A stretch of 64,000 nt of DNA from Styela clava (Eukaryota), in NCBI RefSeq assembly GCF_964204865.1, contig NC_135252.1, positions 17,608,001 to 17,672,000 of the forward strand, in the 5' to 3' direction. How positions within the stretch are numbered: position 1 is the first letter of the stretch; each line of letters begins with the position of its first letter. A model generated the notes under the pieces. That model had not been told where the DNA came from and did no database searches. It saw only the letters and a list, made by a program, of their open reading frames with translations. The translations under genes were made by a program, and so were the position numbers. Of the stretch, positions 1,468-42,709 are shown one piece after another.

Positions 1468-4437
1468 ATGTCTGGAAAAATTGCAGTACTCGTTCTGGCC
1501 ATGATAATCTGCAGTTTTGGATTGACCAGGTTAGTTTTACCTCATCGCCGCGTTCTGTTTTCATTCAATCTGATACATTTCAATTTTTATATGAACTAAA
1601 CAATACAGGTTTATTCTAGCAATGTACTTTAAATTAGTTTTTGTTGAGAAACTTTTTTCTGGCCACATGAAAAAGTTGAAGATTTTATTTAGGAATAAAA
1701 TGCTAAGATAAACGAGAGTATTTATCCACTATCGAAATTATTTTTAAATTTCGTTAATTCCACTGTTTATTATTGATTCATGTTTGATCTTAATTCAAAT
1801 ACAACTTTGCGTATAAAAAAAGATGCATGTCTTTCTCAATGATTCCAAACGAGCTCAATTATAAATGTTCTAACAATTTCCGGATTGATAAGTTACAGAA
1901 AGCTATAATAAAGTCTACATTTCTTTTCACAGGGCAAAGTCTCTTGAATCTCGTAAGTTCATTTATCTTCTTTATTACGTGAGCATTTCTCAAACATTTG
2001 CCAACACATTTGGTAACTAATTCTGGAATTTGGTCGGTATGACATTTGAACCTGTATTTTCACTAAAACTTTTATTCGAATCGAAAAATTTTAAATGCAG
2101 ACGAACAATTCCAGAATGATATATGATATCTTTCTAAAATCCCAAATGCCGAAAAAAACTCAACAAACCTGTAAATCACATTATTGTATCTCAATCTCCA
2201 TCCGATTTAGTTGTTAGTAAATGCATCACAAATTTCCACTTTCCATTTTATATAATTCAGATTTTATCAACAACAACATACAACAAATAAATAAAATTGT
2301 TTTGAATTTGAAGCTATATCGGGTTTGATATTCTTTGTAATCATTGCAGGTGACCAATCTGAAAAATCCTCGAAAACCTTGGACAACAAAGATCAGAAAA
2401 AAATTTTCTGGTGGATTCCTATCGTGAAAGAAATTGTTCATGCAATAGAGAGAGGCAACGGAAATATTTTATTTTATATGATAAAAACCAAATTTAAAAT
2501 CAATTTCATTCATTTACGATATTTTGTTTGTTTGGGGGACGAGTTGGAAAACACACTAAATTTTTATATTTTATCCCATATGGTTCAGAATATTTCAAAA
2601 ATATCTGAAATTACGAGATTAACGTATTTCATTGAAGATATATAAAATTTAAAATTCTTCGTAATTATTGCAGGTGACCAATCTGAAGAAGTCTCAAAAA
2701 ACTTTGATAACAATGATCAGGAAAAAATTTTCTGGTGGGTTCCTATCGTGAAAGAAATTGTTCAAGCAGTAAAGAGAGGTAAGGAAAACATTTGTTTTAT
2801 TGATGAAAAACCAAATTTTAACTAAAATTGTTTGTTTAAATCAGGGATAAGTTCAGAACACTAAATTTTTATATTTTGTTCCATTTGGTTCCAAATTTTC
2901 AAAAGTTTGAAAAACGAGATGAAAATATTCAATTGAAGCTATATCAAATTATCTGTAATTATTGCAGGTGACCAATCTGAAGATGCTTCGAAAACATTTG
3001 ACAACAAAGATCAGGAAAAATTTGTGTGGTGGATTCCTTTAGTGGAAGAAATTGTTCAAGCAGTAAAGAGAGGTAAGGAAAACATTTGTTTTATTGACAA
3101 AAAAACCAAATTTTAACTAAAATTGTTTGTTTAAATCAGGGATAAGTTCAAAACACTAAATTTTTATATTTTGTTCCATTTGGTTCCAAATTTTCAAAAG
3201 TTTGAAAAAACGAGATGAAAATATTCAATTGAAGCTATATCAAATTATCTGTAATTATTGCAGGTGACCAATCTGAAGATGCTTCAAAAACATTTGACAA
3301 CAAAGATCAGGAAAAAATTTTCTGGTGGGTTCCTATCGTGAAAGAAATTGTTCAAGCAGTAAAGAGAGGTAAGGAAAACATTTGTTTTATTGATAAAAAA
3401 AACAAATTTTAACTAAAATTGTTTGTTTAAATCAGGGATAAGTTCAAAACACTAAATTTTTATATTCTGTTCCATTTGGTTCCAAATTTTCAAAAGTTTG
3501 AAAAAACGAGATGAAAATATTCAATTGAAGCTATATCAAATTATCTGTAATTATTGCAGGTGACCAATCTGAAGATGGTTCAAAAACATTTGACAACAAA
3601 GATCAGGAAAAAATTTTCTGGTGGGTTCCTATCGTGAAAGAAATTGTTCAAGCAGTAAAGAGAGGTAAGGAAAACATTTGTTTTATTGATAAAAAAAACA
3701 AATTTTAACTAAAATTGTTTGTTTAAATCAGGGATAAGTTCAAAACACCAAATTTTTATATTTTGTTCCATTTGGTTCCAAATTTTCAAAAGTTTGAAAA
3801 ACCGAGATGAAAATATTCAATTGAAGCTATATCAAATTATCTTTGATTATTGCAGGTGACCAATCTGAAGATGCTTCGAAAACATTTGACAACAAAGATC
3901 AGGAAAAATTTGTGTGGTGGATTCCTTTAGTAGAAGAAATTGTTCAAGCAGTAAAGAGAGGTAAAGAAAATATTTTCCCAAATGAAAGCAGAAGTTGAAA
4001 CAAAACAATATCATATTATTCATAAATTACATGAGTAACCTATCTGAACATTTTTTGATTCAATGTGAAGCACATGAATGACAAATGACTTTTGAAGTTG
4101 ATAAAATACTAAAATTAAATTGTTCATTTGAAAAGTTTGAAATTTCAAGTATATTTGTCTGGATGTAATTGTTACTGATTATACTTATCCTAAACTACAA
4201 ATACGGTATCCGAATTACTCAGTCTAAAGTAACTTGATTTTTGATACCGTGAAATTCAATTATAACAGTTGAAACTTAATCATAGTAAAGACAAACAAAG
4301 CGGTTGTTTCATTCTGTATTTGTCTCGTCTTTATTTCCTTACTAAATATTTAACATTTTTTGTACAATCGTCAATATAGATGATATTAAACGCAGATGTA
4401 TCATTTGATTTCATTAGTTTTCTCTTTTGCAGGTTAA
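1468..4437 (+). CDS. Secreted multi-peptide precursor A1 (clavanin-like host-defence polyprotein, 6 peptide modules, 238 aa if all exons are used)
   Basis: Exons: 1468-1529 (MSGKIAVLVLAMIICSFGLT, signal peptide), 1933-1952 (RAKSLES), 105-nt modules 2350-2454, 2674-2778, 2968-3072, 3264-3368, 3560-3664 and 3856-3960, and last coding exon 4433-4437 (Gly+TAA). All join in frame with ttgcag acceptors and gtaa(a/g)g donors, except module 1, which has a GC donor. Modules read DQSE...DQ(E/K)K-[IFWWVPIVKEIVQAVKR / FVWWIPLVEEIVQAVKR / IFWWIPIVKEIVHAIER]-G. Confidence 0.85.
2674..3960 (+). repeat. Coding tandem repeat, ~295-bp exon+intron unit (A1)
   Basis: Exon starts at 2674, 2968, 3264, 3560 and 3856 (period 294-296). 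Introns are near-identical apart from an A-run. Confidence 0.95.
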
Positions 4438-4545
4438 GTCTTATCCAGCAAATTTGAAAATACAGATGACGATTCGATGATGACCCGTGTCTACTTCCGA
4501 TTTTGATTTACATTTTCTCGTGTGAAATTTAACCTAATTATTCAG

Positions 4546-4551
4546 AATAAA
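4546..4551 (+). terminator. Candidate polyadenylation signal of A1
   Basis: AATAAA ~110 nt after the stop, conserved in the A and B paralogues. A second AATAAA lies near 4597. Confidence 0.45.
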
Positions 4552-10489: not shown

Positions 10490-10839
10490 TGAATAGGATT
10501 TACAATTTGCATAATTATCTCGGGGGAAAGAAAAGACGATAAGACGACTTAATAATACGGCGAATCTATCGTCCGGTTACCAGTCCATGTCGCCGGTATG
10601 GGATCAGTGGGCCAGTTTTTTTGTTTTGTTTTCTGTGCATGGTTGGGCTTGGTGGTCGAGTAAAGCCGTAATTTTCTAGCGATTGCGTGAACCATCCTAC
10701 AACGACGGCCAAGAGTCTAGCAATCCTCTCGCACATAATTATCTTCCCCGGGATTCGAACCAACGGAATCATTGAGGGTAATCAGGTAATGTGTCAAGCG
10801 TATTTTCACGCTTAGCACAATGCGCCACACCGCCCAGCC
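10490..10839 (-). mobile_element. tRNA-derived SINE, inverted diverged copy
   Basis: Reverse-complement similarity to 8589-8928 along its length, including the B-box (ggttcgaatccc). Confidence 0.7.
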
Positions 10840-11003
10840 AATCTACATGCGCAGCAAAAAGAGTAAACAGCATTGAGACATGAATTATACAGTTCCCCTC
10901 TAATGATTTTCGACTTTACTATCGATTCCCGACAGCATATACACAATATAGCTTATTGTTCCTTAAGCCTATTCCTCACTCAAGATTTGAGGATGGTAAA
11001 ACG

Positions 11004-12570: not shown

Positions 12571-15290
12571 GATAAATTCAGAGCGGGCTTAGATCCTTAT
12601 AACACAGAACTTCCGGATATATATGTATAAAAATAATTGTGATTTTATCTAAATTTTATATATTAGTTGAGATTACTCAAATAGTTTCTTCCTAATGCAT
12701 AATCATACAAAAAATTATTTTCAAATAAAATAAGTTCGAACTTAATACTACCGCAGGTATTGGGGGCTTTCTGATTTAAATCCCGACCGTCCCGACCTAT
12801 TTTTTGATTGTTCCTATATCATATAAGTATAAGAAGACATAATATAGGACAGGAAAACAAACCACTGATCCGCGGTTTTTAAAATGCTCTGTTAAGTCAA
12901 GATTTAAAACAGGAAAAATCATTCATAATGCATTCACACAATATTTGATTTACTATTTCGGTATATTATTACGCATCAGCTACTGGCAATAGTTCTGTCA
13001 TCAAGTTTAAGTCATGAAAATACGAATGAGCTGTTGAAAACCCTTCTTGGTCCTACATATTCATGCGAATTCATGTTTTCACATTGAATTTACATTAAAT
13101 CCATCAACATTCTTCTTTTTGCTGATGAATATAAAATAGGTGACGTTTTCAGTAAAAAGGTTTGTCATTTCCGATATAAAATGAATAAAAATCGGTAATG
13201 ATCTTGTGCAATATTATTTTAATCATAACGTTTTTTATTGTGAAAATGGAGGGGGATGTTTAGTGAAGTTGTGCAGGAGCGAAATATCGATTTTTTTTAC
13301 TTCTTCCGACATAACTCAATATCTGAATTTAACGACAATGTTAGCTATTACTGATTTGTTCACAGATAGTCTCATTTTGATACATCGGATATATCAACAC
13401 ATTTCTTTAGAAACACCATGAGTTGTAAAAAATGTTGTAAGATATTGTTCAGGAATACTTTGCTGTTTCTGGGGGTTAGAATTTCATTTTGAAACGAAAT
13501 GGAACGATGTCAAACTTTTTAATTTGTACCCAATATTAGGGATGACGATCTGTCCTACTGCCAACGTTAGACATTTTATGTTCATCATTAAAAGGAAGAA
13601 TACTGGTGGATTTTTGAAAAATCATATTTAAAAACATGGATACCAATGAATATGAAAGGCTTTAACAATAACAACTCGGTAGTATTTCTGCATAAACCTA
13701 TATAATGCAAACGTATGCATTAATTGAAATATTATATCACAGTTTTCTTGGAAATTTAAAAACGCCATATTGAACTTTCATTTTCGTCAATATTTCTGAG
13801 TATAAATTTGACCGCAACCCAAGATAATTTCCGCCTTGATTCAACTGTAGCATCCTTCGGTGAATTGTAATCAATGGTAGTGCATATAATGCAAGGAGTC
13901 TGTAGCAGAAGTGAAGATAAATATCCTAGGATATTCAAGAGACTTGCTGCATACTGCAATTATATCTCAGAAACGTTTCTGACCTTGTGCAGCGGTTCTC
14001 TTGAATCACTTATATACATTTGATATATGGCGGAGTATTGGTAAATGCTGAAAACGGCGACAATGGGAAAACGAGTCGTCGTCATCAAGATGAATCTATC
14101 ATTATTGCAAACTGTGTGATATTCATTACTGAATTTCGAATCAACAGCCTAACTTTGGTTCCCCGCCGCTTCCCTTCATCAATCAAATTATGTTCTTTGC
14201 CTTTTGGCATAAATTTTGCATTTATATCTGTTTATTTGTATGACTGTTTGGGAAAAATAAACTTGACTATGACTACACAAATATATCAAGCCATATTAAG
14301 CAATAATTTTCATTGCCACACCAATTTTGCACCACGACTAATATTAAATATTCACACGAATATGAGAACGGAAAGCAATAAATTGTGCAACATCGACGAT
14401 TTTAGAATATTATTAATGATAATCTTTTAGGCATTGGGTACTATCCTTCTCCGATTTGATTGTTCGAAACTACGCATTCCGTCATTGATATTTTAAGTTT
14501 CTTGATGCATAGCAGGATTCGATTGACCATAATTGTCTATCTATATTACGTCTGGAATTGAAACATCGTTTTCTACGAGTAGTGAGCTAATATACGGATC
14601 AAAATGTATATAGCAAACGATAAGAAATAGTTTCAGTGTGTTTACGTGGCGAAGCAACGATGCGAAATGCACTGCTGGCAAATATCCTTCCAGTATTTCT
14701 ATGTCAGCTTCACGAGGTTTAGTGAATGATGCATGATATTTCAAAGAAAAAATACTCGTTTTTTTTAAAATACAGATAGTTGGTTCTTAATATTTGATCA
14801 GCTGCTCGTTTATAGAGTTGCTTGTTAGGCGGGTAAACAATATTGGTAACTAAGCAAGCTATTCGTGTAATGTTTTCGGATCATAAAATTTGCAGTTTTT
14901 CACAATGAACCCACCAATATAGGATGCGAAAATGTAGCAGATGTTGCAAATGCACAATGAGCCAAACCAAAAACGTTTAAGACTCGCAGATAGATCACTG
15001 ACATAGTGTTGAAATATATACAGCAACATCATAAAGTTTTATCATTTACTTCAGTCTGTATAAACAGTTCACAGAATTGTTCGTATAGTAAGCGGTTTAT
15101 TGTATGTTTATGTCCTAATATCTTTCTTGGAATCCATCGATCAAAATTTTACAAACGTACATGCTTTGATGTAATTTATTCAGAATAATTAGGTTAGATT
15201 TCACACGAGAAAATATGTAAATCAAAATCGGAAGTAGACACGGGTCATCATTGAATCGTCATCTGTATTTTCAAATTTGCTCGATAAGAC

Positions 15291-17149
15291 TTAACCTGCC
15301 GAAGAAAAACTAATGAAGTCAAATAATACTTATGCGCTAAATGATATTTTTAGAGAAGATTGTAACGAAGATACAAAATATTCCAATACAGAAATAAAGA
15401 CAACAAGGCGAGTGAAGAATTGCAGAATAAAACATCCGCTTTGTTTGTCTTTACTATATTTACGGTATTTTTGAAATTTACTCAATATTAAAATCAAAAA
15501 TATCAAATATTAAATTACTTTGAACTAGGTTATTTAGATAACGGTATTGATAATTTGGGATAAGTATAACCAGTAACAATTACATCCAGACAAATATAAT
15601 TAAAATTTCAAATCTTCCAATTGAACAATATCATTCTAGTATTTCATCAACTTTAAAAGTAATATATCAGTCATCAATAGATCAAAATAATTTTACTGTT
15701 AACATTTTATGAAAGTATGTATTTTGTTTTCTGTGAAATACATTAGATTGAACTATGATGATGAATTGATCAGTTTAACTGCTCTTACAATTGTACCAGC
15801 GATGTTTCTTAAAATATTTTTTTTCAGATAGGTTACTCATGTAACTTATGAATAATATAGAATATAGGTAATGCTTTGATTCAACTTCTGCTTTCATTTA
15901 TAAGACAACATATCCGCCTCACCTCTCTTTACTGCTCGAACAATTTCCTCCACTATAGGAATCCACCAGAATCTTTCCTGATCTTTGTCGTCAAATGTTT
16001 TTGACGCTTCATCAGATTGATCACCTGCAATAATTACAGAAAATTTTAAATTTTATATGGCTTCAATTCAATACTTTCATCTCGTATTTTCAAATTTCTG
16101 AAAATTTCGAATTATATAAAACAAAATATATCGGATTTTTAATAAAACGAATTATTGGCTTTACCTCTCTCTACTGCGTTAACAATTTTTGCCACTAAAG
16201 GAATCCACCAAAATCTTTCATGATCTTTGTTATCAACGGTTTTCGAGGATTTCCCAGATTGGTTACCTGCAATAATTACAAAGAATTTCAAATTTGATAT
16301 AGCTTCAAATTTAAAATAAGATTATTTATTTTTCATTTTCCTTTTTTTTTTTTTGATAAAATTTAAATCATATAAAATCAATACGTGAAAATTTGTGATG
16401 CATTTATCAACAACTGAATCGGATGGAGATTTAGATACAATAATGTGATTTACAGAGTTGTTGAGTTTTTTTCGACATTTGGGATTTTAAAAATATATCA
16501 TATATCATTCTGGAATTGTTCGTCAGCATTTAAAAATTTTCGATAAAGATTTAGTGAAAATACAGGTTCAAATGTTATACCGACCAAATTCCAGAAATAG
16601 TTACCAAATGAGTAGGCAAATGATTGAGAAATGCTCACGTAATAAATAAGATAAATTGAACTTACGAGATTCAAGAGACTTTGCCCTGTAAAAATAAATG
16701 CAGACTTTATTATAGCTTTCCGTAACTTATCAATCTGGAAATTGTTAGAACATTTTATAATTGAGCTCGTTTGGAATCATTGAAAAATACATGCATCCTT
16801 TTTTATACGCAAAGCTATATTTGAGTTAAGATTAAACATGGATCAATAATAAACAGTGGAATCGACGATATTGATAAATAATTTCGAAATTGGATAAATA
16901 CTCTCGTCTATCTTGGTATTTTATTCCTGAATGAAATCTTCAACTTTTTCATGTTGCCAGAAAAAAGTTCAAACAAAAATTAATTTAAAGTACATTGATA
17001 GAATTACGTTGTGTTGTTTAGTTCATATAAAAATTCAAATGTATCAGATGGAATGAAAATCAAACACGGCGATGAGGTAAAACTAACCTGGTTAATCCAA
17101 AACTGCAGATCATCATGGCTAAAACTAACATTGCAATTTTTCCAGACAT
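15291..17149 (-). CDS. Secreted peptide precursor B1 (2 modules, 96 aa)
   Basis: Exons 17149-17088 (MSGKIAMLVLAMMICSFGLT), 16685-16666, 16266-16165 (NQSGKSSKTVDNKDHER-FWWIPLVAKIVNAVER-G), 16024-15923 (DQSDEASKTFDDKDQER-FWWIPIVEEIVRAVKR-G) and 15295-15291 (Gly+TAA). All introns are GT-AG and in frame. Confidence 0.85.
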
Positions 17150-19136
17150 TTTTCCTTCTTGTTCTTTTCTGTTGGAAGTTGACTGAATTTGAAACAAAAT
17201 TCGACTGTATAGAAAGTTTGAAGCAAGCGCATTTTATACACTTTACCTTTCCGTCTGTAAACAGATGTTTTATTGAAATATAACACGCAATAAAAAGCTT
17301 ATGTTGTTCCATAAGGTGATTTTTTTGGAATAAATTACAGATGATATCCGGATAAATAAATATTAATTACTTTTCTAATTATTAAGAATCGGATCCACAT
17401 GTATCAGTTTCGCAATATTCTATAGTATTTGATTTGTAATGTAGAGGCTGGTTAGAAGCTCAAATTGTTTTGGTCTCATATTTTCTTTTCGTTAGAAATT
17501 GTTCTCATTTTATGTTCTCATTGCTCTCGTGTGATTGTTGCCTTTCTTGTACATTTGAAAAAAAACGTAAATCAAGGAATTAAATAGGAAACTAGTTTTT
17601 TAATTAATGAAATATCAATTATAGTATCAATGAAATTTTAGTTTACTTCTTACTGCACTTATTACTGCATTGAATACAATTTACGGAAGGATGCGACTGT
17701 TGAATCGAGGCGGAAATTATTATGCGTTGTCGTCTAATACTCAGAAATAATAACGAAAATGAAAGTTCAATATGGCGTTTCTAAATTTCCAAGCAAACTG
17801 TTTTATAACGATTCAATGCACAATTTTTTTTTTGTTATATATATTTATATGCAAAAAATACAACTGATGTGTTATTGTTAAAGCCTTTCGGCATTTCATA
17901 TTCATTGGAATCCATGTTTTCAAATATGATTTTTCAAATAATCCACTAGTCTTCTTCTTTTTATTGACGAACATAAAATTTCGAATGTTGGCAGTAAAAA
18001 GGATCGCCATTCATGTTAAGGGGTGTAAATTGAAAACTTTGACATCGTTCCACTTCGTCCTAAAATGAACAATTAAATTCCGAGGCTAACCTGGCTAACC
18101 CAGACAGTCCCCGAACTCGTAATAGAACTAAAATTAGGAAAATCGTAATAAAATTATGGCCTAATCCTAACCTGGTACACACACTACGGGTGCCCCGTCC
18201 CTAACAAAACATGAAACATTTTGATTAAAGAAAAATTGCAAACGATTAACGCCGATACCGGTTACCATGTTACTTCCTAAAATAAAACTCGGTGTATAAT
18301 TATTATCTTAAGCTGTTATTTGCTCGATTTCTCACTTTTACCTTTATTCATTCATGTGCAACTCAATCCAAAAAACGGTTGGTATTATTTAGGTTTATTT
18401 ATTATATAATCAATATATATATATAATAAATTTATATAATACAAAATTGGTCATTGATTGAATAATAATAAAACAGTTTTCTTGGAAATCTAGAAACGCC
18501 ATATTGAATTTCTATTTTCAATTATTTCTCTGAATATAAACTAAACGGCAACCCATATTAATTTCCGCCTTGATTCAAAAGTCGCATCCTTCCGTGAATT
18601 GTATTCAATTGTAGTAAGTGTAGTAAGAAATCAACTAAAATTTTATCGATACTATAATTAATATTTCATTGATCAAACAATCGATTTCTGTTTTAATTTT
18701 TTGACTTACGTTTTTTAAATATACAAGAATTGCATCAATTACACAAAACGTGAATATTCTTTAAAGTCAGCGTAAAGTAAGGACAATTCCTAACGAAACG
18801 AAAACATTAGGCCAAAACAATTTAAGCTGCTAATCAGCCTCTACATTACAAATCAAATTTATTAGAATATTGCGAAACTGATACAGCTGGATCCGAGTCT
18901 TAATAATTAGAAAATTAATTAATATTTATTCATCCGGATATCATCTGTAATTTATTCCAAAAAATTCACCTTATGGAACAACATAAGCTTTTTATTGCGT
19001 GTTATATTTCAATAAAACATCTGTTTACAGACGGAAAGGTAAAGTGTATAAAATGCGCTTGCTTCAAACTTTCTATACAGTCGAATTTTGTTTCAAATTC
19101 AGTCAACTTCCAACAGAGAAGAACAAGGAAGAAAAA

Positions 19137-22100
19137 ATGTCTGGAAAAATTGCAGTACTCGTTCTGGCCATGATAATCTGCAGTTTTGGATTAACCAGGT
19201 TAGTTTTACCTCATCGCCGCGTTCTGTTTTCATTCAATCTGATACATTTCAATTTTTATATGAACTAAACAATACAGGTTTATTCTAGCAATGTACTTTA
19301 AATTAGTTTTTGTTGAGAAACTTTTTTCTGGCAACATGAAAAAGTTGAAGATTTTATTCAGGAATAAAATGCCAAGATAGACGGAGTATTTAGATAGATA
19401 GAGTATTTATCCACTATCGAAATTATTTTTAAATTTCGTTAATTCCATTGTTTATTATTGATTCATGTTTGATCCTAATTCAAATACAACTTTGCGTATA
19501 AAAATGATGCATGTCTTTCTCAATGATTCCAAACGAGCTCAATTATAAAATGTTCTAACAATTTCCGGATTGATAAGTTACGGAAAGCTTTAATATAGTC
19601 TACATTTATTTTTACAGGGCAAAGTCTCTTGAATCTCGTAAGTTCAATTCATCTAATTTATTACGTGAGCATTTCTCAAACATTTGCCAACTCATTTGGT
19701 AACTATTTCTGGAATTTGGTCGGTATGCCATTTGAACCTGTATTTTCACTAAAACTTTTATTCGAATCGAAAAATTTTAAATGCAGACGAACAATTCCAG
19801 AATGATATATGATATTTTTCTAAATCCCAAATGCCGAAAAAACTCAACAACCCTGTAAATCACATTATTGTATCTCAAACTCCATCCGATTCAGTTGTTA
19901 GTGCACCACAAATTTTCACGTTTTATTTTATATAATTCAGTTTTAATCAATTATTTTATTTTATAGGATAAAAACCGAATTTAAAAGCAATTTCATTCAT
20001 TTACGATATTTTGTTTGTTTGGGGGACGAGTTGGAAAACACACTAAATTTTTATATTTTATCCCATATGGTTCGGAATATTTCAAAAATATCTGAAAATA
20101 CGAGATGAAAGTATTTCATTGAAGATATATAAAATTTAAAATTCTTTGTAATTATTGCAGGTGACCAATCTGAAGAAGTCTCAAAAAACTTTGATAACAA
20201 TGATCAAGAAAAAATTTTCTGGTGGGTTCCTATCGTGAAAGAAATTGTTCAAGCAGTAAAGAGAGGTAAGGAAAACATTTGTTTTATTGATAAAAAACCA
20301 AATTTTATCTAAAATTGTTTGTTTAAATCAGGGATAAGTGCAAAACACTAAATTTTTATATTTTGTTCCATTTGGTTCCAAATTTTCAAAAGTTTGAAAA
20401 AACGAGATGAAAATATTCAATTGAAGCTATATCAAATTATCTGTAAATATTGCAGGTGACCAATCTGAAGATGCTTCAAAAACATTTGACAACAAAGATC
20501 AGGAAAAAATTTTCTGGTGGGTTCCTATCGTGAAAGAAATTGTTCAAGCAGTAAAGAGAGGTAAGGAAAACATTTGTTTTATTGATAAAAAAAACAAATT
20601 TTAACTAAAATTGTTTGTTTAAATCAGGGATAAGTTCAAAACACTAAATTTTTATATTTTGTTCCATTTGGTTCCAAATTTTCAAAAGTTTGAAAAAACG
20701 AGATGAAAATATTCAATTGAAGCTATATCAAATTATCTGTAATTATTGCAGGTGACCAATCTGAAGATGCTTCAAAAACATTTGACAACAAAGATCAGGA
20801 AAAAATTTTCTGGTGGGTTCCTATCGTGAAAGAAATTGTTCAAGCAGTACAGAGAGGTAAGGAAAACATTTGTTTTATTGATAAAAAACCAAATTTTATC
20901 TAAAATTGTTTGTTTAAATCAGGGATAAGTGCAAAACACTAAATTTTTATATTTTGTTCCATTTGGTTCCAAATTTTCAAAAGTTTGAAAAAACGAGATG
21001 AAAATATTCAATTGAAGCTATATCAAATTATCTGTAAATATTGCAGGTGACCAATCTGAAGATGCTTCAAAAACATTTGACAACAAAGATCAGGAAAAAA
21101 TTTTCTGGTGGGTTCCTATCGTGAAAGAAATTGTTCAAGCAGTAAAGAGAGGTAAGGAAAACATTTGTTTTATTGATAAAAAAAAACAAATTTTAACTAA
21201 AATTGTTTGTTTAAATCAGGGATAAGTTCAAAACACTAAATTTTTATATTTTGTTCCATTTGGTTCCAAATTTTCAAAAGTTTGAAAAAACGAGATGAAA
21301 ATATTCAATTGAAGCTATATCAAATTATCTGTAATTATTGCAGGTGACCAATCTGAAGATGCTTCAAAAACATTTGACAACAAAGATCAGGAAAAAATTT
21401 TCTGGTGGGTTCCTATCGTGAAAGAAATTGTTCAAGCAGTAAAGAGAGGTAAGGAAAACATTTGTTTTATTGATAAAAAAAAACAAATTTTAACTAAAAT
21501 TGTTTGTTTAAATCAGGGATAAGTTCAAAACACTAAATTTTTATATTTTGTTCCATTTGGTTCCAAATTCTCAAAAGTTTGAAAAACCGAGATGAAAATA
21601 TTCAATTGAAGCTATATCAAATTATCTGTTAAAATTGCAGGTGACCAATCTGAAGATGCTTCAAAAACATTTGACAACAAAGATCAGGAAAAATTCGTTT
21701 GGTGGATTCCTTTAGTGGAAGAAATTGTTCAAGCAGTAAAGAGAGGTAAGGAAAACATTTGTTTTGTTGATAAAAAAACAAATTTTAACTAAAATTGTTT
21801 GTTTAAATCAGGGATAAGTTCAAAACACTAAATTTTTATATTTTGTTCCATTTGGTTCCAAATTTTCAAAAGTTTGAAAAACCGAGATGAAAATATTCAA
21901 TTGAAGCTATATCAAATTATCTGTTATTATTGCAGGTGACCAATCTGAAGATGCTTCAAAAACATTTGACAACAAAGATCAGGAAAAATTCGTTTGGTGG
22001 ATTCCTTTAGTGGAAGAAATTGTTCAAGCAGTAAAGAGAGGTAAGGAAAACATTTGTTTTGTTGATAAAAAAACAAATTTCAACTAAAATTGTTTGTTTA

Positions 22101-22817: not shown

Positions 22818-23252
22818 GTCTTATCCAGCAAATTTGAAAATACAGATGACGATTCGATGATGACCCGTGTCTACTTCCGATTTTGATTTACATATTTTCT
22901 CGTGTGAAATTTAACCTAATTATTCAGAATAAATTACATCAAAGCATGGACGTTTGTAACATTTTGGAACATACAACATATATATATATATATACAATAA
23001 ACCGCTTACTATACGAACAAATCTATGAACGGTTTGTACAGGCTGAAGCAAATCGAATAACTTTATGATGTAACTGTATATGTTGCAACACTATATCGGT
23101 GATCGTTCTGCCAGTCATTAACGTATCTGGGTTTGCTTATTGTGCATTCGCAGCATCTGCTGCCTCAAAAATTTTCGCATCAATTATTGTTTGAATTTTG
23201 AAATCAAGGTGCAGGGGACAGTAAAATAGTTTTGTAACGACGTAACTTACAT

Positions 23253-31910: not shown

Positions 31911-34900
31911 GTACTCTTTTTTTTTTAAATACAGATAGTTGGTTCTTAATATTTGATCAGCTGCTCGTTTATAGAGTTGCTTGCTAGGCGGATAAATAAT
32001 ATTGGTAACTAAGCAAGCTATTAGTGTAATTTTTTCGGATCATAAAATTTGCAGTTTTTCACAATGAACCCACCAATATATGATGCGAAAATGTAGCAGA
32101 TGTTGCAAATGCACAATGAGCCAAACCAAAAACGTTTGAGGCTCGCAGATAGATCACTGACATAGTGTTGAAATATATACAGCAACATCATAAAGTTTTA
32201 TCATTTACTTCAGTCTGTACAAAACAGTTCACAGAATTGTTCGTATAGTAAGCGGTTTATTTTATGTTTATGTCCTAATATCTTTCTTGGAATCCATCGA
32301 CCAAAATTTTACAAACGTCCATGCTTTGATGTAATTTATTCTGAATAATTAGGTTAGATTTCACACGAAAAAATATGTAAATCAAAATCGGAAGTAGACA
32401 CGGGTCATCATTGAATCGTCATCTGTATTTTCAAATTTGCTCGATAAGACTTAACCTGCCGAAGAAAAACTAATGAAGTCAAATAATACTTATGCGCTGA
32501 ATAATATTTTTTGAGAAGATTGTAACAAAGATACAAAATATTCCAATACAGAAATAAAGACAACAAGGCGAGTGAAGAATTGCAGAATAAAACATCCGCT
32601 TTGTTTGTCTTTACTATATTTACGGTATTTTTGAAATTTACTCAATATTAAAATCAAAAATATCAAATATTAAATTACTTTGAACTAGGTTATTTAGATT
32701 ACGGTATTGATAATTTGGGATAAGTATAATCAGTAACAATTACATCCAGGCAAATATAATTAAAATTTCAAATCTTCCGATTGAACAATATCATTCTAGT
32801 ATTTCATCAACTTTAAAAGTAATATATCAGTCATCAATAGATCAAAATAATTTTAATGTTAACATTTTACTAAAGTATGTACTTTGTTTTCTGTGAAATA
32901 TATTAGATTTAATTATGATGATGAATTGATCAGTTTAACTGCTCTTACAATTGTACCAGCAACGTTTTTTAACACAGTGTCGGTTCTGTCCTTATCATTT
33001 AATCCAATATTTTTTTTTCAGATAGGTTACTCATGTAACTTATGAATAATATACAATATAGGTAATGCTTTGATTCAACTTCTGCTTTCATTTATTAGAC
33101 AACATATCCGCCTAACCTCTCTTTACTGCTCGAACAATTTCCTCCACTATAGGAATCCACCAGAATCTTTCCTGATCTTTGTTGTCAAATGTTTTTGACG
33201 CTTCATCAGATTGATCACCTGCAATAATTACAGAAAATTTTAAATTTTATATGGCTTCAATTCAATACTTTCATCTCGTATTTTCAAATTTCTGAAAATT
33301 TCGAATTATATAAAACAAAATATATCGGATTACACGGATATAACGGATTATTGTCTTTACCTCTCTCTACTGCGTTAACAATTTTTACCACTAAAGGAAT
33401 CCACCAAAATCTTTCATGATCTTTGTTATCAACGGTTTTCGAGGATTTCCCAGATTGGTTACCTGCAATAATTACAAAGAATTTCAAATTTGATATAGCT
33501 TCAAATTTAAAATAGGATTATTTATTTTTCATTTTCGTTTTTTTTTTTTGATAAAATTTAAATCATATAAAATCAATACGTGAAAATTTGTGATGCATTT
33601 ATCAACAACTGAATCGGATGGAGATTTAGATACAATAATGTGATTTACAGAGTTGTTGAGTTTTTTTCGACATTTGGGATTTTAAAAATATATCATATAT
33701 CATTCTGGAATTGTTCGTCAGCATTTAAAAATTTTCGATAAAGATTTAGTGAAAATACAGGTTCAAATGTTATACCGACCAAATTCCAGAAATAGTTACC
33801 AAATGTGTTGGCAAATGATTGAGAAATGCTCACGTAATAATTAGATAAATTGAACTTACGAGATTCAAGAGACTTTGCCCTGTAAAATTAAATGTAGACT
33901 ATATTATAGCTTTCCGTAACTTATCAATCCGGAAATTGTTAGAACATTTTATAATTGAGCTCGTTTGGAATCATTGAAAAATACATGCATCTTTTTTTAT
34001 ACGCAAAGTTATATTTGGGTTAAGATCAAACATGGATCAATATTAAACAGTGGAATTATTGACGATATTGATAAATAATTTCGAAATTGGATAAATACTC
34101 TCGTCTATCTTGGTATTTTATTCCTGAATGAAATCTTCAACTTTTTCATGTTGCCAGAAAAAAGTTCTCAACAAAAATTAATTTAAAGTACATTGATAGA
34201 ATTACGTTGTGTTGTTTAGTTCATATGAAAATTGAAATGTATCAGATTGAATGAATCAGAACAGAACGCGGCGATGAGGTAAAACTAACCTGGTTAATCC
34301 AGGTTAAACATGAAAGATGACAAGGCAGCAGCAAGTGCCAACAAAACATGAAACGGTGGAAAGAAGGACTGGTTGCTCATTAACAGCCTAACCTAAAACA
34401 ATAACTTCGCTGTAAACATATAACAACTGAACTACCTTCATAACGATCTATAACCTGCCCTAGTTAATTATTTAATTGTCAACCATAGGCACTAAATCTG
34501 CCTATATTTAATAAATATAACAACCTATATTTGTAGTAATATACTAGAACGAATAGCTAAATAAACGCCATATACACCAGAATACTGGCTCTCTTATATT
34601 TTTGGTGAAGGTTTCTTCGTTTATCTCTTATTTATAATTTATTCTTTTTATGTTTTTTTTTTAACTTCTTTGTCTTTCCGTAAACTGACTCTCTACTCTT
34701 TTTCTGTTATACCTCCTAAATTTCTTTTCTATTAGAGGAGACGGACATCACGTGACAGGGAGAGTTGATATGAGTGTGCACCAAGGTGTATTTCTCCCAA
34801 CTCTCTTCTGTCACGGAAGTGTTCGTCGAATCTACCCTCTGTTTTCTCCTGGTGTTATTATTTTGCCTTCTTATAGGTATTTACAGGTAACAACATCTAC

Positions 34901-35000: not shown

Positions 35001-37389
35001 CTCTTTTTTTTTTTAAATACAGATAGTTGGTTCTTAATATTTGATCAGCTGCTCGTTTATAGAGTTGCTTGCTAGGCGGATAAATAATATTGGTAACTAA
35101 GCAAGCTATTAGTGTAATTTTTTCGGATCATAAAATTTGCAGTTTTTCACAATGAACCCACCAATATATGATGCGAAAATGTAGCAGATGTTGCAAATGC
35201 ACAATGAGCCAAACCAAAAACGTTTGAGGCTCGCAGATAGATCACTGACATAGTGTTGAAATATATACAGCAACATCATAAAGTTTTATCATTTACTTCA
35301 GTCTGTACAAAACAGTTCACAGAATTGTTCGTATAGTAAGCGGTTTATTTTATGTTTATGTCCTAATATCTTTCTTGGAATCCATCGACCAAAATTTTAC
35401 AAACGTCCATGCTTTGATGTAATTTATTCTGAATAATTAGGTTAGATTTCACACGAGAAAATATGTAAATCAAAATCGGAAGTAGACACGGGTCATCATT
35501 GAATCGTCATCTGTATTTTCAAATTTGCTCGATAAGACTTAACCTGCCGAAGAAAAACTAATGAAGTCAAATAATACTTATGCGCTGAATAATATTTTTT
35601 GAGAAGATTGTAACAAAGATACAAAATATTCCAATACAGAAATAAAGACAACAAGGCGAGTGAAGAATTGCAGAATAAAACATCCGCTTTGTTTGTCTTT
35701 ACTATATTTACGGTATTTTTGAAATTTACTCAATATTAAAATCAAAAATATCAAATATTAAATTACTTTGAACTAGGTTATTTAGATTACGGTATTGATA
35801 ATTTGGGATAAGTATAATCAGTAACAATTACATCCAGGCAAATATAATTAAAATTTCAAATCTTCCGATTGAACAATATCATTCTAGTATTTCATCAACT
35901 TTAAAAGTAATATATCAGTCATCAATAGATCAAAATAATTTTAATGTTAACATTTTACTAAAGTATGTACTTTGTTTTCTGTGAAATATATTAGATTTAA
36001 TTATGATGATGAATTGATCAGTTTAACTGCTCTTACAATTGTACCAGCAACGTTTTTTAACACAGTGTCGGTTCTGTCCTTATCATTTAATCCAATATTT
36101 TTTTTTCAGATAGGTTACTCATGTAACTTATGAATAATATACAATATAGGTAATGCTTTGATTCAACTTCTGCTTTCATTTATTAGACAACATATCCGCC
36201 TAACCTCTCTTTACTGCTCGAACAATTTCCTCCACTATAGGAATCCACCAGAATCTTTCCTGATCTTTGTTGTCAAATGTTTTTGACGCTTCATCAGATT
36301 GATCACCTGCAATAATTACAGAAAATTTTAAATTTTATATGGCTTCAATTCAATACTTTCATCTCGTATTTTCAAATTTCTGAAAATTTCGAATTATATA
36401 AAACAAAATATATCGGATTACACGGATATAACGGATTATTGTCTTTACCTCTCTCTACTGCGTTAACAATTTTTACCACTAAAGGAATCCACCAAAATCT
36501 TTCATGATCTTTGTTATCAACGGTTTTCGAGGATTTCCCAGATTGGTTACCTGCAATAATTACAAAGAATTTCAAATTTGATATAGCTTCAAATTTAAAA
36601 TAGGATTATTTATTTTTCATTTTCGTTTTTTTTTTTTGATAAAATTTAAATCATATAAAATCAATACGTGAAAATTTGTGATGCATTTATCAACAACTGA
36701 ATCGAATGGAGATTTAGATACAATAATGTGATTTACAGAGTTGTTGAGTTTTTTTCGACATTTGGGATTTTAAAAATATATCATATATCATTCTGGAATT
36801 GTTCGTCAGCATTTAAAAATTTTCGATAAAGATTTAGTGAAAATACAGGTTCAAATGTTATACCGACCAAATTCCAGAAATAGTTACCAAATGTGTTGGC
36901 AAATGATTGAGAAATGCTCACGTAATAATTAGATAAATTGAACTTACGAGATTCAAGAGACTTTGCCCTGTAAAATTAAATGTAGACTATATTATAGCTT
37001 TCCGTAACTTATCAATCCGGAAATTGTTAGAACATTTTATAATTGAGCTCGTTTGGAATCATTGAAAAATACATGCATCTTTTTTTATACGCAAAGTTAT
37101 ATTTGAGTTAAGATCAAACATGGATCAATATTAAACAGTGGAATTATTGACGATATTGATAAATAATTTCGAAATTGGATAAATACTCTCGTCTATCTTG
37201 GTATTTTATTCCTGAATGAAATCTTCAACTTTTTCATGTTGCCAGAAAAAAGTTCTCAACAAAAATTAATTTAAAGTACATTGATAGAATTACGTTGTGT
37301 TGTTTAGTTCATATGAAAATTGAAATGTATCAGATTGAATGAATCAGAACAGAACGCGGCGATGAGGTAAAACTAACCTGGTTAATCCA
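31229..37389 (+). repeat. Near-perfect ~3.08-kb tandem duplication
   Basis: 31229-34301 is repeated at 34307-37389 (offset 3078-3088). The copies differ mainly in poly(A)/poly(T) length. Confidence 0.92.
32451..34301 (-). pseudogene. 5'-truncated peptide precursor B2 (exons 2-5 intact, no promoter or ATG)
   Basis: Exons 33879-33860, 33462-33361, 33218-33117 and 32455-32451 match B3. Only the last ~12 nt of exon 1 remain (34290-34301) at the duplication junction. Confidence 0.8.
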
Positions 37390-37439
37390 AAACTGCAGAT
37401 CATCATGGCCAAAACAAATACTGCAATTTTTCCAGACAT
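35539..37439 (-). CDS. Secreted peptide precursor B3 (2 modules, 96 aa)
   Basis: Exons 37439-37378 (MSGKIAVFVLAMMICSFGLT), 36967-36948, 36550-36449 (FWWIPLVVKIVNAVER-G), 36306-36205 (FWWIPIVEEIVRAVKR-G) and 35543-35539. Confidence 0.85.
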
Positions 37440-39433
37440 TTTTCCTTCTTGTTTTTTTCTGTTGGAAGTTGACTGAATTTGAAACAAAATTCGACTGTAT
37501 AGAAAGTTTGAAGCAAGCGCATTTTATACACTTTACCTTTCCGTCTGTAAACAGATGTTTTATTGAAATATAACACGCAATAAAAAGCTTATGTTGTTCC
37601 ATAAGGTGAATTTTTTGGAATAAATTACAGATGATATCCGGATAAATAAATATTAATTACTTTTCTAATTATTAAGAATCGGATCCACCTGTATCAGTTT
37701 CGCAATATTCTATAGTATTTGATTTGTAATGTAGAGGCTGGTTAGAAGCTCAAATTGTTTTGGTCTCATATTTTCTTTTCGTTAGAAATTGTTCTCATTT
37801 TATGTTCTCATTGCTCTCGTGTGATTGTTGCCTTTCTTGTACATTTGAAAAAAAAACGTAAATCAAGGAATTAAATAGGAAACTAGTTTTTTAATTAATG
37901 AAATATCAATTATAGTATCAATGAAATTTTAGTTTACTTCTTACTGCACTTATTACTGCATTGAATACAATTTACGGAAGGATGCGACTGTTGAATCGAG
38001 GCGGAAATTATTATGCGTTGTCGTCTAATACTCAGAAATAATAACGAAAATGAAAGTTCCATATGGCGTTTCTAAAGTTCCAAGCAAACTGTTTTATAAC
38101 GATTGAATGCACAATTTTTTTTTTGTTATATATATTCATATGCAAAAAATACAACTGATTTGTTATTGTTAAAGCCTTTCGGCATTTCATATTCATTGGA
38201 ATCCATATTTTCAAATATGATTTTTTAAATAATCCACTAGTCTTCTTCTTTTTATTGACGAACATAAAATTTCGAATGTTGGCAGTAAAAAGGATCGCCA
38301 TTCATGTTAAGGGGTGTAAATTGAAATCTTTGACATCGTTCCACTTTGTCTTAAAATGAACAATTAAATTCCGAGGCTAACTTGGCTAACCCAGACAGTC
38401 CCCGAACTCGTAATAGAACTAAAATTAGGAAAATCGTAATAAAATTATGGCCTAATCCTAACCTGGTACACACACTACGGGTGCCCCGTCCCTACTCAAA
38501 ACATGAAACATTTTGATTAAAGAAAAATTGCAAACGATTAACACCGATACCGGTTACCATGTTACTTCCTAAAACGAAACTCGGTGTATAATTATTATCT
38601 TAAGCTGTTATTTGCTCGATTTCTCACTTTTACCTTCATTCATTCATCTGCAACTCAATCCAAAAAACGGGTGGTATAATCTAGGTTTATTTATTATATA
38701 ATCAATGTATACATATATAATAAATGTATATAATACAAAATTGGTCATTGATTGAATGATTATAAAACCTTTTTCTTGGAAATCTAGAAACGCCATATTG
38801 AATTTCCATTTTCGATTATTTCTCTGAATATAAACTAAACTAAACTAAACTAATATTAATTTCCGCCTTGATTCAAAAGTCGCATCCTTCTGTGAAATGT
38901 ATCCAATTGTAGTAAGTGTAGTAAGAAATCAACTAAAATTTTATCGATACTATAATTAATATTTCATTGATCAAACAATTGATTTCTGTTTTAATTTTTT
39001 GACTTGCGTTTTTGAAATATACAAGAATTGCAACAATTACACAAATCGTGAATATTCTTTAAAGTCAGCGTAAAGTAAGGACAATTCCTAACGAAACGAA
39101 AACATTAGGCCAAAACAATTTAAGCTGCTAATCAGCCTCTACATTACAAATCAAATTCATTAGAATATTGCGAAACTGATACAGCTGGATCCGAGTCTTA
39201 ATAATTAGAAAAGTAATTAATATTTATTCATCCGGATATCATCTGTAATTTATTCCAAAAAATTCACCTTATGGAACAACATAAGCTTTTTATTGCGTGT
39301 TATATTTCAATAAAACAGCTGTTTACAGGCGGAAAGGTAAAGTGTATAAAATGCGCTTGCTTCAAACTTTCAATACAGTCGAATTTTGTTTCAAATTCAG
39401 TCAACTTCCAACAGAGAAGAACAAGAAGGAAAA

Positions 39434-42400
39434 ATGTCTGGAAAAATTGCAGTACTCGTTCTGGCCATGATAATCTGCAATTTTGGATTAACCAGGTTAG
39501 TTTTACCTCATCGCCGCGTTCTGTTTTCATTCAATCTGATATATTTCAATTTTTATATGAACTAAACAATACAGGTTTATTCTAGCAATGTACTTTAAAT
39601 TAGTTTTTGTTGAGAAACTTTTTTCTGGCAACATGAAAAAGTTGAAGATTTTATTCAGAAATAAAATGCTAAGATAAACGAGAGTATTTATCCACTATCG
39701 AAATTATTTTTAAATTTCGTTAATTCCATTGTTTATTATTGATTCATGTTTGATCCTAATTCAAATACAACTTTGCGTATAAAAAAAGATGCATGTCTTT
39801 CTCAATGATTCCAAACGAGCTCAATTATAAAATGTTCTAACAATTTCCAGATTGATAAGTTACGGAAAGCTATAATATAGTCTACATTTATTTTCACAGG
39901 GCAAAGTCTCTTGAGTCTCGTAAGTTCAATTTATCTTCTTTATTACGTGAGCATTTCTCAAACATTCGCCAACACATTTGGTAACTATTTCTGGAATTTG
40001 GTCGGTTTGCCATTTGAACCTGTATTTTCACTAAAACTTTTATTCGAATCGAAAAATTTAAAATGCTGACGAACAATTCCAGAATGATATATGATATATT
40101 TTTAAAATCCCAAATGACGAAAAAAACTCAGCAACCCTGTAAATCACATTATTGTATCTCAATCTCCATCCCATTCAGTTGTTAGTAAATGCATCACAAA
40201 TTTTCACGTTTTATTTTATATAATTCAGATTTTATCGACAACAACAAAATAAACGAGAACGAAAAAAAATAAAATTGTTTGAATTTGAAGCTATATCGGG
40301 TTTGAAATTCTTTGTAATTATTGCAGGTGACCAATCTGAAAAATCCTCGAAAACCTTGGACAACAAAGATCAGAAAAAAATTTTCTGGTGGATTCCTATC
40401 GTGAAAAAAATTGTTCATGCAATAGAGAGAGGCAAAGGAAATATTTTATTTTATAGGATAAAAACCGAATTTAAAAGCAATTTCATTCATTTACGATATT
40501 TTGTTTGTTCGGGGGACGAGTTGGAAAACACACTGAATTTTTATATTTTATCCCATTTGGTTCGGAATATTTCAAAAATATCTGAAATTACGAGATGAAA
40601 GTATTTCATTGAAGATATATAAAATTTAAAATTCTTTGTAATTATTGCAGGTGACCAATCTGAAGAAGTCTCAAAAAACTTTGATAACAATGATCAGGAA
40701 AAATTTTTCTGGTGGGTTCCTATCGTGAAAGAAATTGTTCAAGCAGTAAAGAGAGGTAAGGAAAACATTTGTTTTATTGATGAAAAACAAAATTTTAACT
40801 AAAATTGTTTGTTTAAATCAGGGATAAGTTCAGAACACTAAATTTTTATATTTTGTTCCATTTGGTTCCAAATTTTCAAAAGTTTGAAAAACGAGATGAA
40901 AATATTCAATTGAAGCTATATCAAATTATCTGTAATTATTGCAGGTGACCAATCTGAAGATGCTTCGGAAACATTTGACAACAAAGATCAGGAAAAATTT
41001 GTGTGGTGGATTCCTTTAGTGGAAGAAATTGTTCAAGCAGTAAAGAGAGGTAAGGAAAACATTTGTTTTATTGATAAAAAAACCAAATTTTAACTAAAAT
41101 TGTTTGTTTAAATCAGGGATAAGTTCAAAACACTACATTTTTATATTTTGTTCCATTTGGTTCCAAATTTTCAAAAGTTTGAAAAAACGAGATGAAAATA
41201 TTCAATTGAAGCTATATCAAATTATCTGTAATTATTGCAGGTGACCAATCTGAAGATGCTTCAAAAACATTTGACAACAAAGATCAGGAAAAAATTTTCT
41301 GGTGGGTTCCTATCGTGAAAGAAATTGTTCAAGCAGTAAAGAGAGGTAAGGAAAACATTTGTTTTATTGATAAAAAAAACAAATTTTAACTAAAATTGTT
41401 TGTTTAAATCAGGGATAAGTTCAAAACACTAAATTTTTATATTTTGTTCCATTTGGTTCCAAATTTTCAAAAGTTTGAAAAAACGAGATGAAAATATTCA
41501 ATTGAAGCTATATCAAATTATCTGTAATTATTGCAGGTGACCAATCTGAAGATGCTTCAAAAACATTTGACAACAAAGATCAGGAAAAAATTTTCTGGTG
41601 GGTTCCTATCGTGAAAGAAATTGTTCAAGCAGTAAAGAGAGGTGAGGAAAACATTTGTTTTATTGATAAAAAAAACAAATTTTAACTAAAATTGTTTGTT
41701 TAAATCAGGGATAAGTTCAAAACACTAAATTTTTATATTTTGTTCCATTTGGTTCCAAATTTTCAAAAGTTTGAAAAACCGAGATGAAAATATTCAATTG
41801 AAGCTATATCAAATTATCTGTTATTATTGCAGGTGACCAATCTGAAGATGCTTCAAAAACATTTGACAACAAAGATCAGGAAAAATTCGTTTGGTGGATT
41901 CCTTTAGTGGAAGAAATTGTTCAAGCAGTAAAGAGAGGTAAGGAAAACATTTGTTTTGTTGATAAAAAAACAAATTTCAACTAAAATTGTTTGTTTAAAT
42001 CAGGGATAAGTTCAAAACACTAAATTTTTATATTTTGTTCCATTTGGTTCCAAATTTTCAAAAGTTTGAAAAACCGAGATGAAAATATTCAATTGAAGCT
42101 ATATCAAATTATCTGTTATTATTGCAGGTGACCAATCTGAAGATGCTTCGAAAACATTTGACAACAAAGATCAGGAAAAATTCGTGTGGTGGATTCCTTT
42201 AGTAGAAGAAATTGTTCAAGCAGTAAAGAGAGGTAAAGAAAATATTTTCCCAAATGAAAGCAGAAGTTGAAACAAAACAATATCATATTATTCATAAATT
42301 ACATGAGTAACCTATCTGAACATTTTTTGATTCAATGTGAAGCACATGAATGACAAATGACTTTTGAAGTTGATAAAATACTAAAATTAAATTGTTCATT

Positions 42401-42709
42401 TGAAAAGTTTGAAATTTCAAGTATATTTGTCTGGATGTAATTGTTACTGATTATACTTATCCTAAACTACAAATACGGTATCCGAATTACTCAGTCTAAA
42501 GTAACTTGATTTTTGATACCGTGAAATTCAATTATAACAGTTGAAACTTAATCATAGTAAAGACAAACAAAGCGGTTGTTTCATTCTGTATTTGTCTCGT
42601 CTTTATTTCCTTACTAAATATTTAATATTTTTTGTACAATCGTCAATATAGATGATATTAAACGCAGATGTATCATTTGAATTCAATAGTTTTCTCATTT
42701 GCAGGTTAA
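39434..42709 (+). CDS. Secreted multi-peptide precursor A3 (7 modules, 273 aa)
   Basis: Exons 39434-39495 and 39900-39919, modules starting at 40327 (IFWWIPIVKKIVHAIER, GC donor), 40651 (FFWWVPIVKEIVQAVKR), 40945, 41241, 41537, 41833 and 42128, and last exon 42705-42709. Confidence 0.85.

Follow-up and report, generated by a model that had tools for sequence, protein, structure and literature searches.

Does a stretch of Styela clava DNA in which one short peptide motif recurs 27 times hold working genes and, if so, what do these genes make and to which known genes are they related? The stretch, hereafter the window, comprises 64,000 nucleotides (nt) of the 377-Mb S. clava assembly (C3:17,608,001-17,672,000), and the motif is Trp-Trp-x-Pro (WWxP). 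A sequence-only reading had described six paralogous loci and proposed a host-defence peptide system related to, but distinct from, the clavanins of the same species. Our analysis establishes the WWxP genes as a real, expressed and undescribed polyprotein branch of a superfamily centred on clavanin. A host-defence role for their peptides appears probable and is weighed below against three other explanations.

Repeated peptide exons and their transcripts

A six-frame scan of the window returned exactly 27 WW.P matches, all within the same module context, and splice-site mapping placed them in 27 module exons, which confirmed the number of copies proposed from sequence. The exons measured 105 nt in the plus-strand loci A, C and F and 102 nt in the minus-strand loci B, D and E, with six modules in A, eight in C, seven in F and two in each of the others. 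All 27 were symmetric (phase 1-1), had lengths divisible by three, open frames and intact splice sites, and began at the acceptor ttgcag/GT; the donor was AGAG/gt in 25 of them and AGAG/gc in the two that end at positions 2454 and 40431. Each module encoded an acidic spacer (most commonly DQSEDASKTFDNKDQEK) ending in EK, ER or KK, then a WWxP peptide of 16-17 residues, and its last base opened a Gly codon that the GT of the next exon completes. This is the spacer-peptide order that had been expected, except that an Arg (C/GT), not a Gly, stands before the first module of each gene.

Upstream of the arrays, locus D excepted, we found a TATA-like box, a 62-nt coding signal exon (MSGKIAVLVLAMIICSFGLT) ending in phase 2 (AG/gt) and a 20-nt exon encoding (R)AKSLES. 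The latter (GGCAAAGTCTCTTGAATCTC) occurred in all six loci, with one variant in F. All six were closed by a Gly-stop exon (cag/GTTAAG) with AATAAA 113-115 nt downstream and a conserved 3' untranslated region (UTR), the open reading frame (ORF) stopping directly after Gly in every case. The predicted products range from 96 to 308 aa (62 + 20 + n x 105, or 102, + 5 nt), those of loci A, C and F having 238-308 aa. The layout of signal, AKSLES, phase-1 module and Gly-stop exons therefore stood for the five intact loci, which carry 25 of the 27 modules, but not for locus D, where the last 11 nt of the signal exon survive and both ATG and TATA box are absent. A signal-region query matched locus D at query positions 179-220 only. 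This locus, which sits at the breakpoint of a 3,088-bp tandem duplication, is probably a pseudogene that arose from the duplication of locus E.

To follow transcription, sequencing-run depth and joints were examined on positions 15051-21050 in three RNA-like runs (X1-X3) and one DNA-like run (X5); the RNA label of the runs is an automated guess, and their coverage pattern is that of RNA. In X1-X3, depth reached 10^3-10^5 on exon bins, tens on most intron bins, and 0 or less than 2 on intergenic bins outside a dispersed repeat; being derived from contigs, these depths cannot rank expression levels. X5 had a roughly flat depth of ~5-40, exceeded only on that repeat and on the module exons (50-100), which are themselves repeated. 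The joints listed for X1-X3 (Table 1) were all absent from X5 and all had GT..AG ends on the gene strand. Furthermore, loose ends of RNA contigs indicated that the GC donor of locus A is used (...ATTGTTCATGCAATAGAGAG joined to the next module type), that the GC-donor exon of locus F (AAAAAAATTGTTCATGCAATAGAGAG, the F-only KKIVHAIER exon) is joined to its next module, and that a module end of the plus-strand type (GTTCAAGCAGTAAAGAG) is joined to the terminal exon. The signal-to-AKSLES junction was not among the listed joints and is supported by the RefSeq model XP_039267856.1. The WWxP genes are transcribed, with splicing at the sites predicted: spliced contigs were present in three RNA-like runs and in none from X5, which disposes of the lack of spliced transcripts that the sequence-only reading had named as grounds for dropping it. 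When words were sampled from the 7-kb stretch 15600-22600, 23-27% of them, roughly the exon share, were present in four runs of one 2020 study, three of which are X1-X3, and 55-62% in four DNA-like runs.

At least one WWxP gene was already modelled, unnamed, in RefSeq. A one-module open frame retrieved XP_039267856.1 (P0009), 'uncharacterized protein LOC120342882 isoform X4 [Styela clava]', a 96-aa protein that reads signal-RAKSLES-R-module-G-module-G-stop and differs by 2 residues from the exon translations of locus E; isoform X3 (P0010) continues into a third module. Repeated units and spacers within one precursor are thus documented in mRNA by spliced module-module joints and by a two-module RefSeq model. 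With P0009 as a query, a protein search over 53-168 aa found only P0009 itself, and searches of PDB and Pfam gave no match. A module profile run against 1.84 billion representatives gave four matches, namely two Styela paralogs, an IMG metagenome polyprotein and P0001 (ENA, 709 aa). The last, with a repeat unit of 57 aa (...TQEVLWYIPLCDQPVLAVPRM...), was the top match as the sum of 11 weak stretches; it is probably spurious. In the literature, we found no paper containing WWxP peptide strings or the RefSeq gene and protein identifiers, nothing on the WWxP family in work on clavanin precursors, Styela antimicrobial peptides (AMPs) or Styela neuropeptides, and no paper on clavanin gene structure or a wider clavanin family.

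Nine distinct WWxP peptides occurred among the 27 window copies, the most frequent being IFWWVPIVKEIVQAVKR (nine copies) and FVWWIPLVEEIVQAVKR (eight copies), with seven others. They consist of an F/I-W-W aromatic head, a Pro and an 11-residue amphipathic segment, with a predicted net charge of +1 to +3 if amidated. The hydrophobic moment after the Pro (0.69-0.93) exceeded that of at least 97% of shuffled sequences. A single-sequence AF2 model of P0009 placed helices on both peptides, and indeed throughout, at low confidence (predicted local distance difference test score, pLDDT, of 58), which lends weak support to peptide helicity. The peptides fell into a more cationic (K) and a near-neutral (E) class, in a ratio that varies among genes. 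Differences between the classes lie mostly in the N-terminal half of the peptide (IFWWVPIVKE vs FVWWIPLVEE), the spacer and the upstream intron being nearly identical. Across 16 core units, variable sites numbered 3 of 53 in the spacer, 8 of 119 aligned columns in the upstream intron and 10 of 51 in the peptide.

Relation to clavanins and to other precursors

A clavanin A query found two clavanin genes on C1 (L017 and L018, with C-like and E-like peptides). They lie 36 kb apart, at C1:10.538 and 10.575 Mb, in 3-kb surroundings that are nearly identical where compared, suggesting a recent segmental duplication. Their 47-nt coding signal exon (MKTTILILLILGLGI) ends AA/gt in phase 2, and their 20-nt exon (TGCAAAATCTCTGGAGGAAA) encodes (N)AKSLEE and ends in phase 1. 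Exon 3 starts GA AAA TCG, the corresponding start of a window module being GT GAC. The last exon, with a score of 119 bits against Pfam Clavanin, reads R-KSEEEK / LFKLLGRIIHHVGNFVHGFSHVF or VFHLLGKIIHHVGNFVYGFSHVF / G-DDQQDNGK...stop. The clavanin cuts fall after E-K and at Gly/Asp, since the mature form of clavanin A is an amidated 23-mer. Intron positions and phases match between the window genes and the clavanin genes, and the TATA box, the ATG and both exon borders align at the DNA level. Kinship is also suggested by the paralog P0005, whose signal and AKSLE part alone gave a match below threshold to Pfam Clavanin (17.1 bits against a cutoff of 21; E 0.0067). Like the WWxP genes, clavanin and clavaspirin (Pfam PF05452, S. 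clava) thus combine a TATA box, a phase-2 signal exon, a 20-nt AKSLE exon and a phase-1 peptide exon in which an acidic pro-piece ending in E-K precedes the peptide and a Gly-Asp follows it. Both the prepropeptide plan and the gene structure of the family, as seen in L017 and L018, recur in the window genes, and the clavanin precursor described in the sequence-only reading proved accurate in its AKSLE start and in its EK and Gly-Asp boundaries.

The two kinds of gene differ in the peptide part. In a clavanin gene, the terminal exon encodes one His/Phe-rich peptide of 23 residues, an amidated helix, and an acidic tail of 27 residues. WWxP genes instead have 2-8 symmetric, internal peptide exons followed by a Gly-stop exon, and their predicted peptides have 16-17 residues with at most one His. 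Since the gene plan is shared but the mature parts are without detectable similarity, sequence comparison places the WWxP genes as relatives of the clavanin genes by export cassette and processing logic, outside the Pfam-defined clavanin family. The proposal of a distinct family is upheld by unrelated mature peptides, by the lack of a Pfam Clavanin match and by the multiplied internal exon.

Searching the genome with signal-exon DNA revealed four more loci at 70-72% identity, with the same cassette and symmetric modules and with other peptides. The paralogous modular genes of this genome (LOC120342297 and LOC120336745; L012-L015 and L019), clustered at C2:12.02-12.05 Mb, C3:2.79 Mb and C3:10.63 Mb, resemble the WWxP genes in having a signal exon (MSAKIAVFIL...), a 20-nt AKSLE or AKSVE exon and phase-1 modules, up to 14 per gene, with DQSE...E[KR] spacers and a G-D end. 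All their modules keep the arrangement [DE]QSE...E[KR] / peptide / G-D, and it is the peptides that differ: FWGLFVPLVKKAIEEI (5 copies), FPLQWIVPIVKAINGL, LWPASFVWGSL, IWPVGILWVL and others. Those of L012-L014 and L022 (C2:12.02-12.05 Mb) and L019 (C3:10.63-10.64 Mb) include FWGLFVPLVKKAIEEI, IWPVGILWVL and FPLQLIVNIVKAIEGL; RefSeq lists these genes as uncharacterized LOC120336745 and LOC120342297, with several isoforms each. L015 (4094-7400; C3:2.789-2.792 Mb) holds at least 14 tandem 96-nt modules with a 183-nt period; its peptides, LWPASFVWGSL or IWPAFFAWGTL followed by G-DKDT, are short, non-amphipathic and built on Trp and Phe. The last exon of L015, the only paralog end examined, is a spacer remnant with an in-frame stop, and of the loci examined only those of the WWxP cluster showed a Gly-stop exon. 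Effector-peptide families typically combine a conserved signal and pro region with a mature part that is hypervariable.

Two likenesses were noted beyond this genome. The IMG metagenome polyprotein (P0004, P0006, P0008; 306-597 aa) is, like the WWxP precursors, secreted and composed of many WW[IKL]P[IL]A-type peptides after acidic spacers; P0008 differs from them by its RR...G-R sites, its units RR/WWIPIAQGVLTAL-G-R and its long extra spacers. P0008 aligned to P0009 from the N-terminal signal region on (pairwise E 3e-9), and the profile E-value of the IMG polyprotein was 1.3e-4 summed over 6 repeats. Searches for P0008 in this genome and in a metagenome scan found nothing. By these alignments, P0008 may show the WWxP peptide type beyond Styela, or it may be a case of convergence; the motif may accordingly be older than Styela.

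The precursors of frog-skin peptides (magainin, caerulein, PGLa; FSAP) also combine a conserved export cassette with hypervariable amphipathic peptides in multiple copies. They differ from the WWxP genes in their dibasic sites, and homology at the sequence level was not shown. By ESM features, P0009 lay nearest to the FSAP and bombinin clusters (0.77-0.80), a score range often reached by shuffled proteins, so that the resemblance to frog-skin AMP precursors (nearest cluster 0.80) is a lead only. Clavanin precursors themselves have been likened to amphibian AMP prepropeptides in one review.

Predicted processing, function and alternatives

We consider it reasonably probable that the WWxP genes encode secreted prepro-polyproteins of the clavanin-gene superfamily, from which membrane-active host-defence (antimicrobial or cytolytic) peptides would be released. 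The TATA promoter drives a transcript made of the signal-peptide exon, the AKSLES micro-exon, 2-8 modules and the Gly-stop exon with its 3' UTR. The signal peptide would be cut near GLTRA/KS and, by analogy with clavanin, each module after E-K, E-R or K-K and at Gly/Asp, with Gly as the amide donor; the last copy would end in Gly-COOH and need no endoprotease. Each precursor would thus yield 2-8 peptides such as IFWWVPIVKEIVQAVKR-NH2 or FVWWIPLVEEIVQAVKR-NH2 and an equal number of acidic spacer peptides (for example GDQSEDASKTFDNKDQEK). The predicted peptides have masses of 1.94-2.15 kDa, with monoisotopic values of 2109.261 for IFWWVPIVKEIVQAVKR-NH2 and 2110.209 for FVWWIPLVEEIVQAVKR-NH2, and of 2039.183, 1967.151 and 1939.120 among the others. 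R-G-D is invariant at module ends, but either K, E or Q can precede the terminal Arg, which argues against a dibasic cut. The Trp-Trp pair would serve as an interfacial anchor and, together with the short amphipathic helix, would mediate membrane action. This anchor and helix, in a clavanin-type gene with very high exon k-mer depth, are the reasons for preferring a membrane-active host-defence role.

Several observations weigh against this reading. The Pfam Clavanin profile gave no match at E <= 1 for P0009 or P0010. BLASTP produced no alignment between the WWxP peptides and clavanin A, and alignment scores against clavanin A, as well as against halocyntin (FWG...), were no better than those of shuffles, the L012-type peptide being marginal in this shuffle test (0.01, uncorrected for 14 comparisons). 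Compared with classical cationic AMPs, the peptides have little net charge, the E class being at about +1 even when amidated. The RR...G-R sites of P0008 leave open, by analogy, a cut after the terminal Arg without amidation in Styela. Next to no sampled words were present in four other RNA-like runs of the same species label, which makes expression look conditional. Finally, the cleavage sites, the amidation and the activity are all inferred. Our confidence in host defence is kept moderate because of the low charge and this indirect route to activity.

The same precursors could instead deliver signalling ligands (a neuropeptide, hormone or pheromone-like peptide), the multi-copy amidated precursor amplifying the dose as in FMRFamide-type genes. 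Neuropeptide genes do typically have Gly amide donors and several copies per precursor, RR and G-R sites of the classical kind occur in the distantly similar P0008, and conditional expression would fit. We nevertheless judge signalling to be rather improbable: the front end is common to clavanin AMP genes, and the conserved dibasic (KR/RR) sites that flank neuropeptide copies are absent from the modules, which have E-K, E-R or K-K on the N side and a KR, ER or QR pair on the C side. Moreover, the 16-17-mers combine a Trp-Trp head with a hydrophobic, amphipathic character, the peptides turn over fast between paralogs, unlike receptor-constrained ligands, and exon k-mer depth was very high in all three RNA-like runs examined.

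Cleavage of the precursor is itself a prediction, and a chain in which acidic and amphipathic segments alternate might fold as a helical repeat protein, as the low-confidence AF2 helices throughout P0009 would allow. Such an uncleaved secreted protein (lipid-binding, a tunic or adhesive component, or a granule matrix) is nonetheless unlikely given that the modules are bounded in the manner of clavanin, for which the mature peptide has been determined, that the ORF terminates exactly at Gly, and that copy number varies from 2 to 8 with whole modules lost or duplicated without other change, which fits independent units better. The chance that the arrays are non-functional or an assembly artefact, that is, untranscribed tandem repeats with fortuitously open frames, is negligible. 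Homogenised introns do indicate very recent duplication and locus D is truncated, but the spliced contigs exclude this explanation, and the independent RefSeq model, the 27 open frames with intact splice sites, and the coverage of the region by X5 and the other DNA-like runs argue in the same direction.

With release of host-defence peptides as the preferred reading, a wider and more tentative proposal is that the family works as a lineage-specific peptide factory. An export cassette (promoter, signal exon and AKSLE micro-exon) would be combined with interchangeable symmetric peptide exons, and unequal crossing-over, deletion of whole exons and possibly exon skipping would tune the dose and the mixture. 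Clavanins would then be the single-module members and WWxP peptides a new class, weakly cationic, anchored by Trp, amidated at the C-terminus and membrane-active, delivered as K/E cocktails. K-class and E-class peptides may act together.

Cluster organisation and array turnover

The genes lie on a segmental triplication, each copy of which is a divergently transcribed pair of a short minus-strand gene and a long plus-strand gene (Table 1). The 5' regions of the minus-strand and plus-strand genes form inverted repeats with 92-94% complementarity. Units of 295 bp, each an exon plus an intron, share 90-100% identity inside an array, in their introns as well as their exons. A clean deletion of about 191 nt has removed from locus C the GC-donor module that opens the arrays of A and F. 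As unit identity and this deletion show, array length changes through gain and loss of whole 295-bp units. A genome-wide search with the module profile returned exactly 30 WWxP modules, all at C3:17.606-17.650 Mb. The six loci described earlier are those of the window, but the cluster extends beyond it: a seventh gene with three modules lies directly to the left, on the minus strand (C3:17,606,024-17,607,616; L016 7451-9489). Its signal, AKSLES and Gly-stop exons are intact, and its peptides end in ...LVVKIVNAVER, ...LVAKIVNAVER and ...IVEEIVRAVQR.

Table 1. Positions of the WWxP loci, their exons and the RNA joints in the window
Feature	Position	Strand	Details
Segmental triplication bearing the genes	1..46766		copies ~17.7 and 20.3 kb apart
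Locus A, 6 modules	1378..4551	+	TATA-like 1378; signal coding sequence 1468-1529; 20-nt exon 1933-1952
Locus A modules	2350-2454 (GC donor), 2674-2778, 2968-3072, 3264-3368, 3560-3664, 3856-3960	+	
Locus A 3' end	Gly-stop exon from 4433 (GTTAA); AATAAA 4546-4551	+	
Locus B, 2 modules	15175..17244	-	TATA-like 17238; signal exon 17149-17088; 20-nt exon 16685-16666
Locus B modules	16266-16165, 16024-15923	-	Gly-stop exon from 15295; AATAAA 15180-15175
Locus C, 8 modules	19047..22933	+	TATA-like 19047; signal exon 19137-19198; 20-nt exon 19618-19637
Locus C modules 1-4	20161-20265, 20456-20560, 20752-20856, 21047-21151	+	
Locus C modules 5-8	21344-21448, 21641-21745, 21936-22040, 22231-22335	+	Gly-stop exon from 22813; AATAAA 22928-22933
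Locus D, 5'-truncated, 2 modules	32335..34300	-	signal-exon remnant 34300-34290; 20-nt exon 33879-33860
Locus D modules	33462-33361, 33218-33117	-	Gly-stop exon from 32455; AATAAA 32340-32335
Locus E, 2 modules	35423..37534	-	TATA-like 37528; signal exon 37439-37378; 20-nt exon 36967-36948
Locus E modules	36550-36449, 36306-36205	-	Gly-stop exon from 35543; AATAAA 35428-35423
Locus F, 7 modules	39345..42825	+	TATA-like 39345; signal exon 39434-39495; 20-nt exon 39900-39919
Locus F modules 1-4	40327-40431 (GC donor), 40651-40755, 40945-41049, 41241-41345	+	
Locus F modules 5-7	41537-41641, 41833-41937, 42128-42232	+	Gly-stop exon from 42705; AATAAA 42820-42825
Joint, B module 1 to module 2	16024/16165	-	X1-X3, none in X5
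Joint, B module 2 to Gly-stop exon	15295/15923	-	X1-X3, none in X5
Joint, B AKSLES exon to module 1	~16266/16666 with 20-nt side	-	X1-X3, none in X5
Joints, C modules 1 to 2 and 2 to 3	20265/20456, 20560/20752	+	X1-X3, none in X5

The promoter region shared by each divergent pair contains a dispersed element of about 100 bp (~400-520, 18090-18190 and ~38370-38490), with at least 1,422 candidate copies in the genome at 91-95% identity. Its depth reached ~98,000 in X5, compared with 9,000-17,000 in X1-X3. The element resembles a miniature inverted-repeat transposable element or a short interspersed nuclear element and has no Rfam or tRNA match. Another high-copy dispersed element, of about 215 bp (~10175-10390), is 97-98% identical to copies on many contigs, and a 4-kb query spanning it gave 4,638 first-look candidates. 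It lies in the GC-richer spacer between plus-strand and minus-strand genes, which also has ~700-bp inverted repeats with 79% identity. An ORF of 143-147 aa is kept in all three segmental copies on the minus strand (7506-7937, 25188-25619 and 45665-46108); having no Pfam match and a composition unlike that of a real protein, it is probably no gene. The larger ORFs between the WWxP genes had no match in a Pfam search, and no Rfam families or tRNAs were found in the window.

Clavanins, which serve as drug templates, belong to the most thoroughly studied antimicrobial peptides of marine origin. Our results indicate that they are one branch of a larger superfamily that shares an export cassette. 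In the sister WWxP branch, the peptide exon became a module of variable copy number, with 2-8 per gene and 30 in the genome, and this branch adds nine unreported peptide sequences, encoded by exons that reach very high k-mer depth in RNA-like runs. If the peptides act in host defence, the cluster would be a natural case, among the invertebrates most closely related to vertebrates, of a repertoire of immune effectors shaped by concerted evolution at the level of exons.

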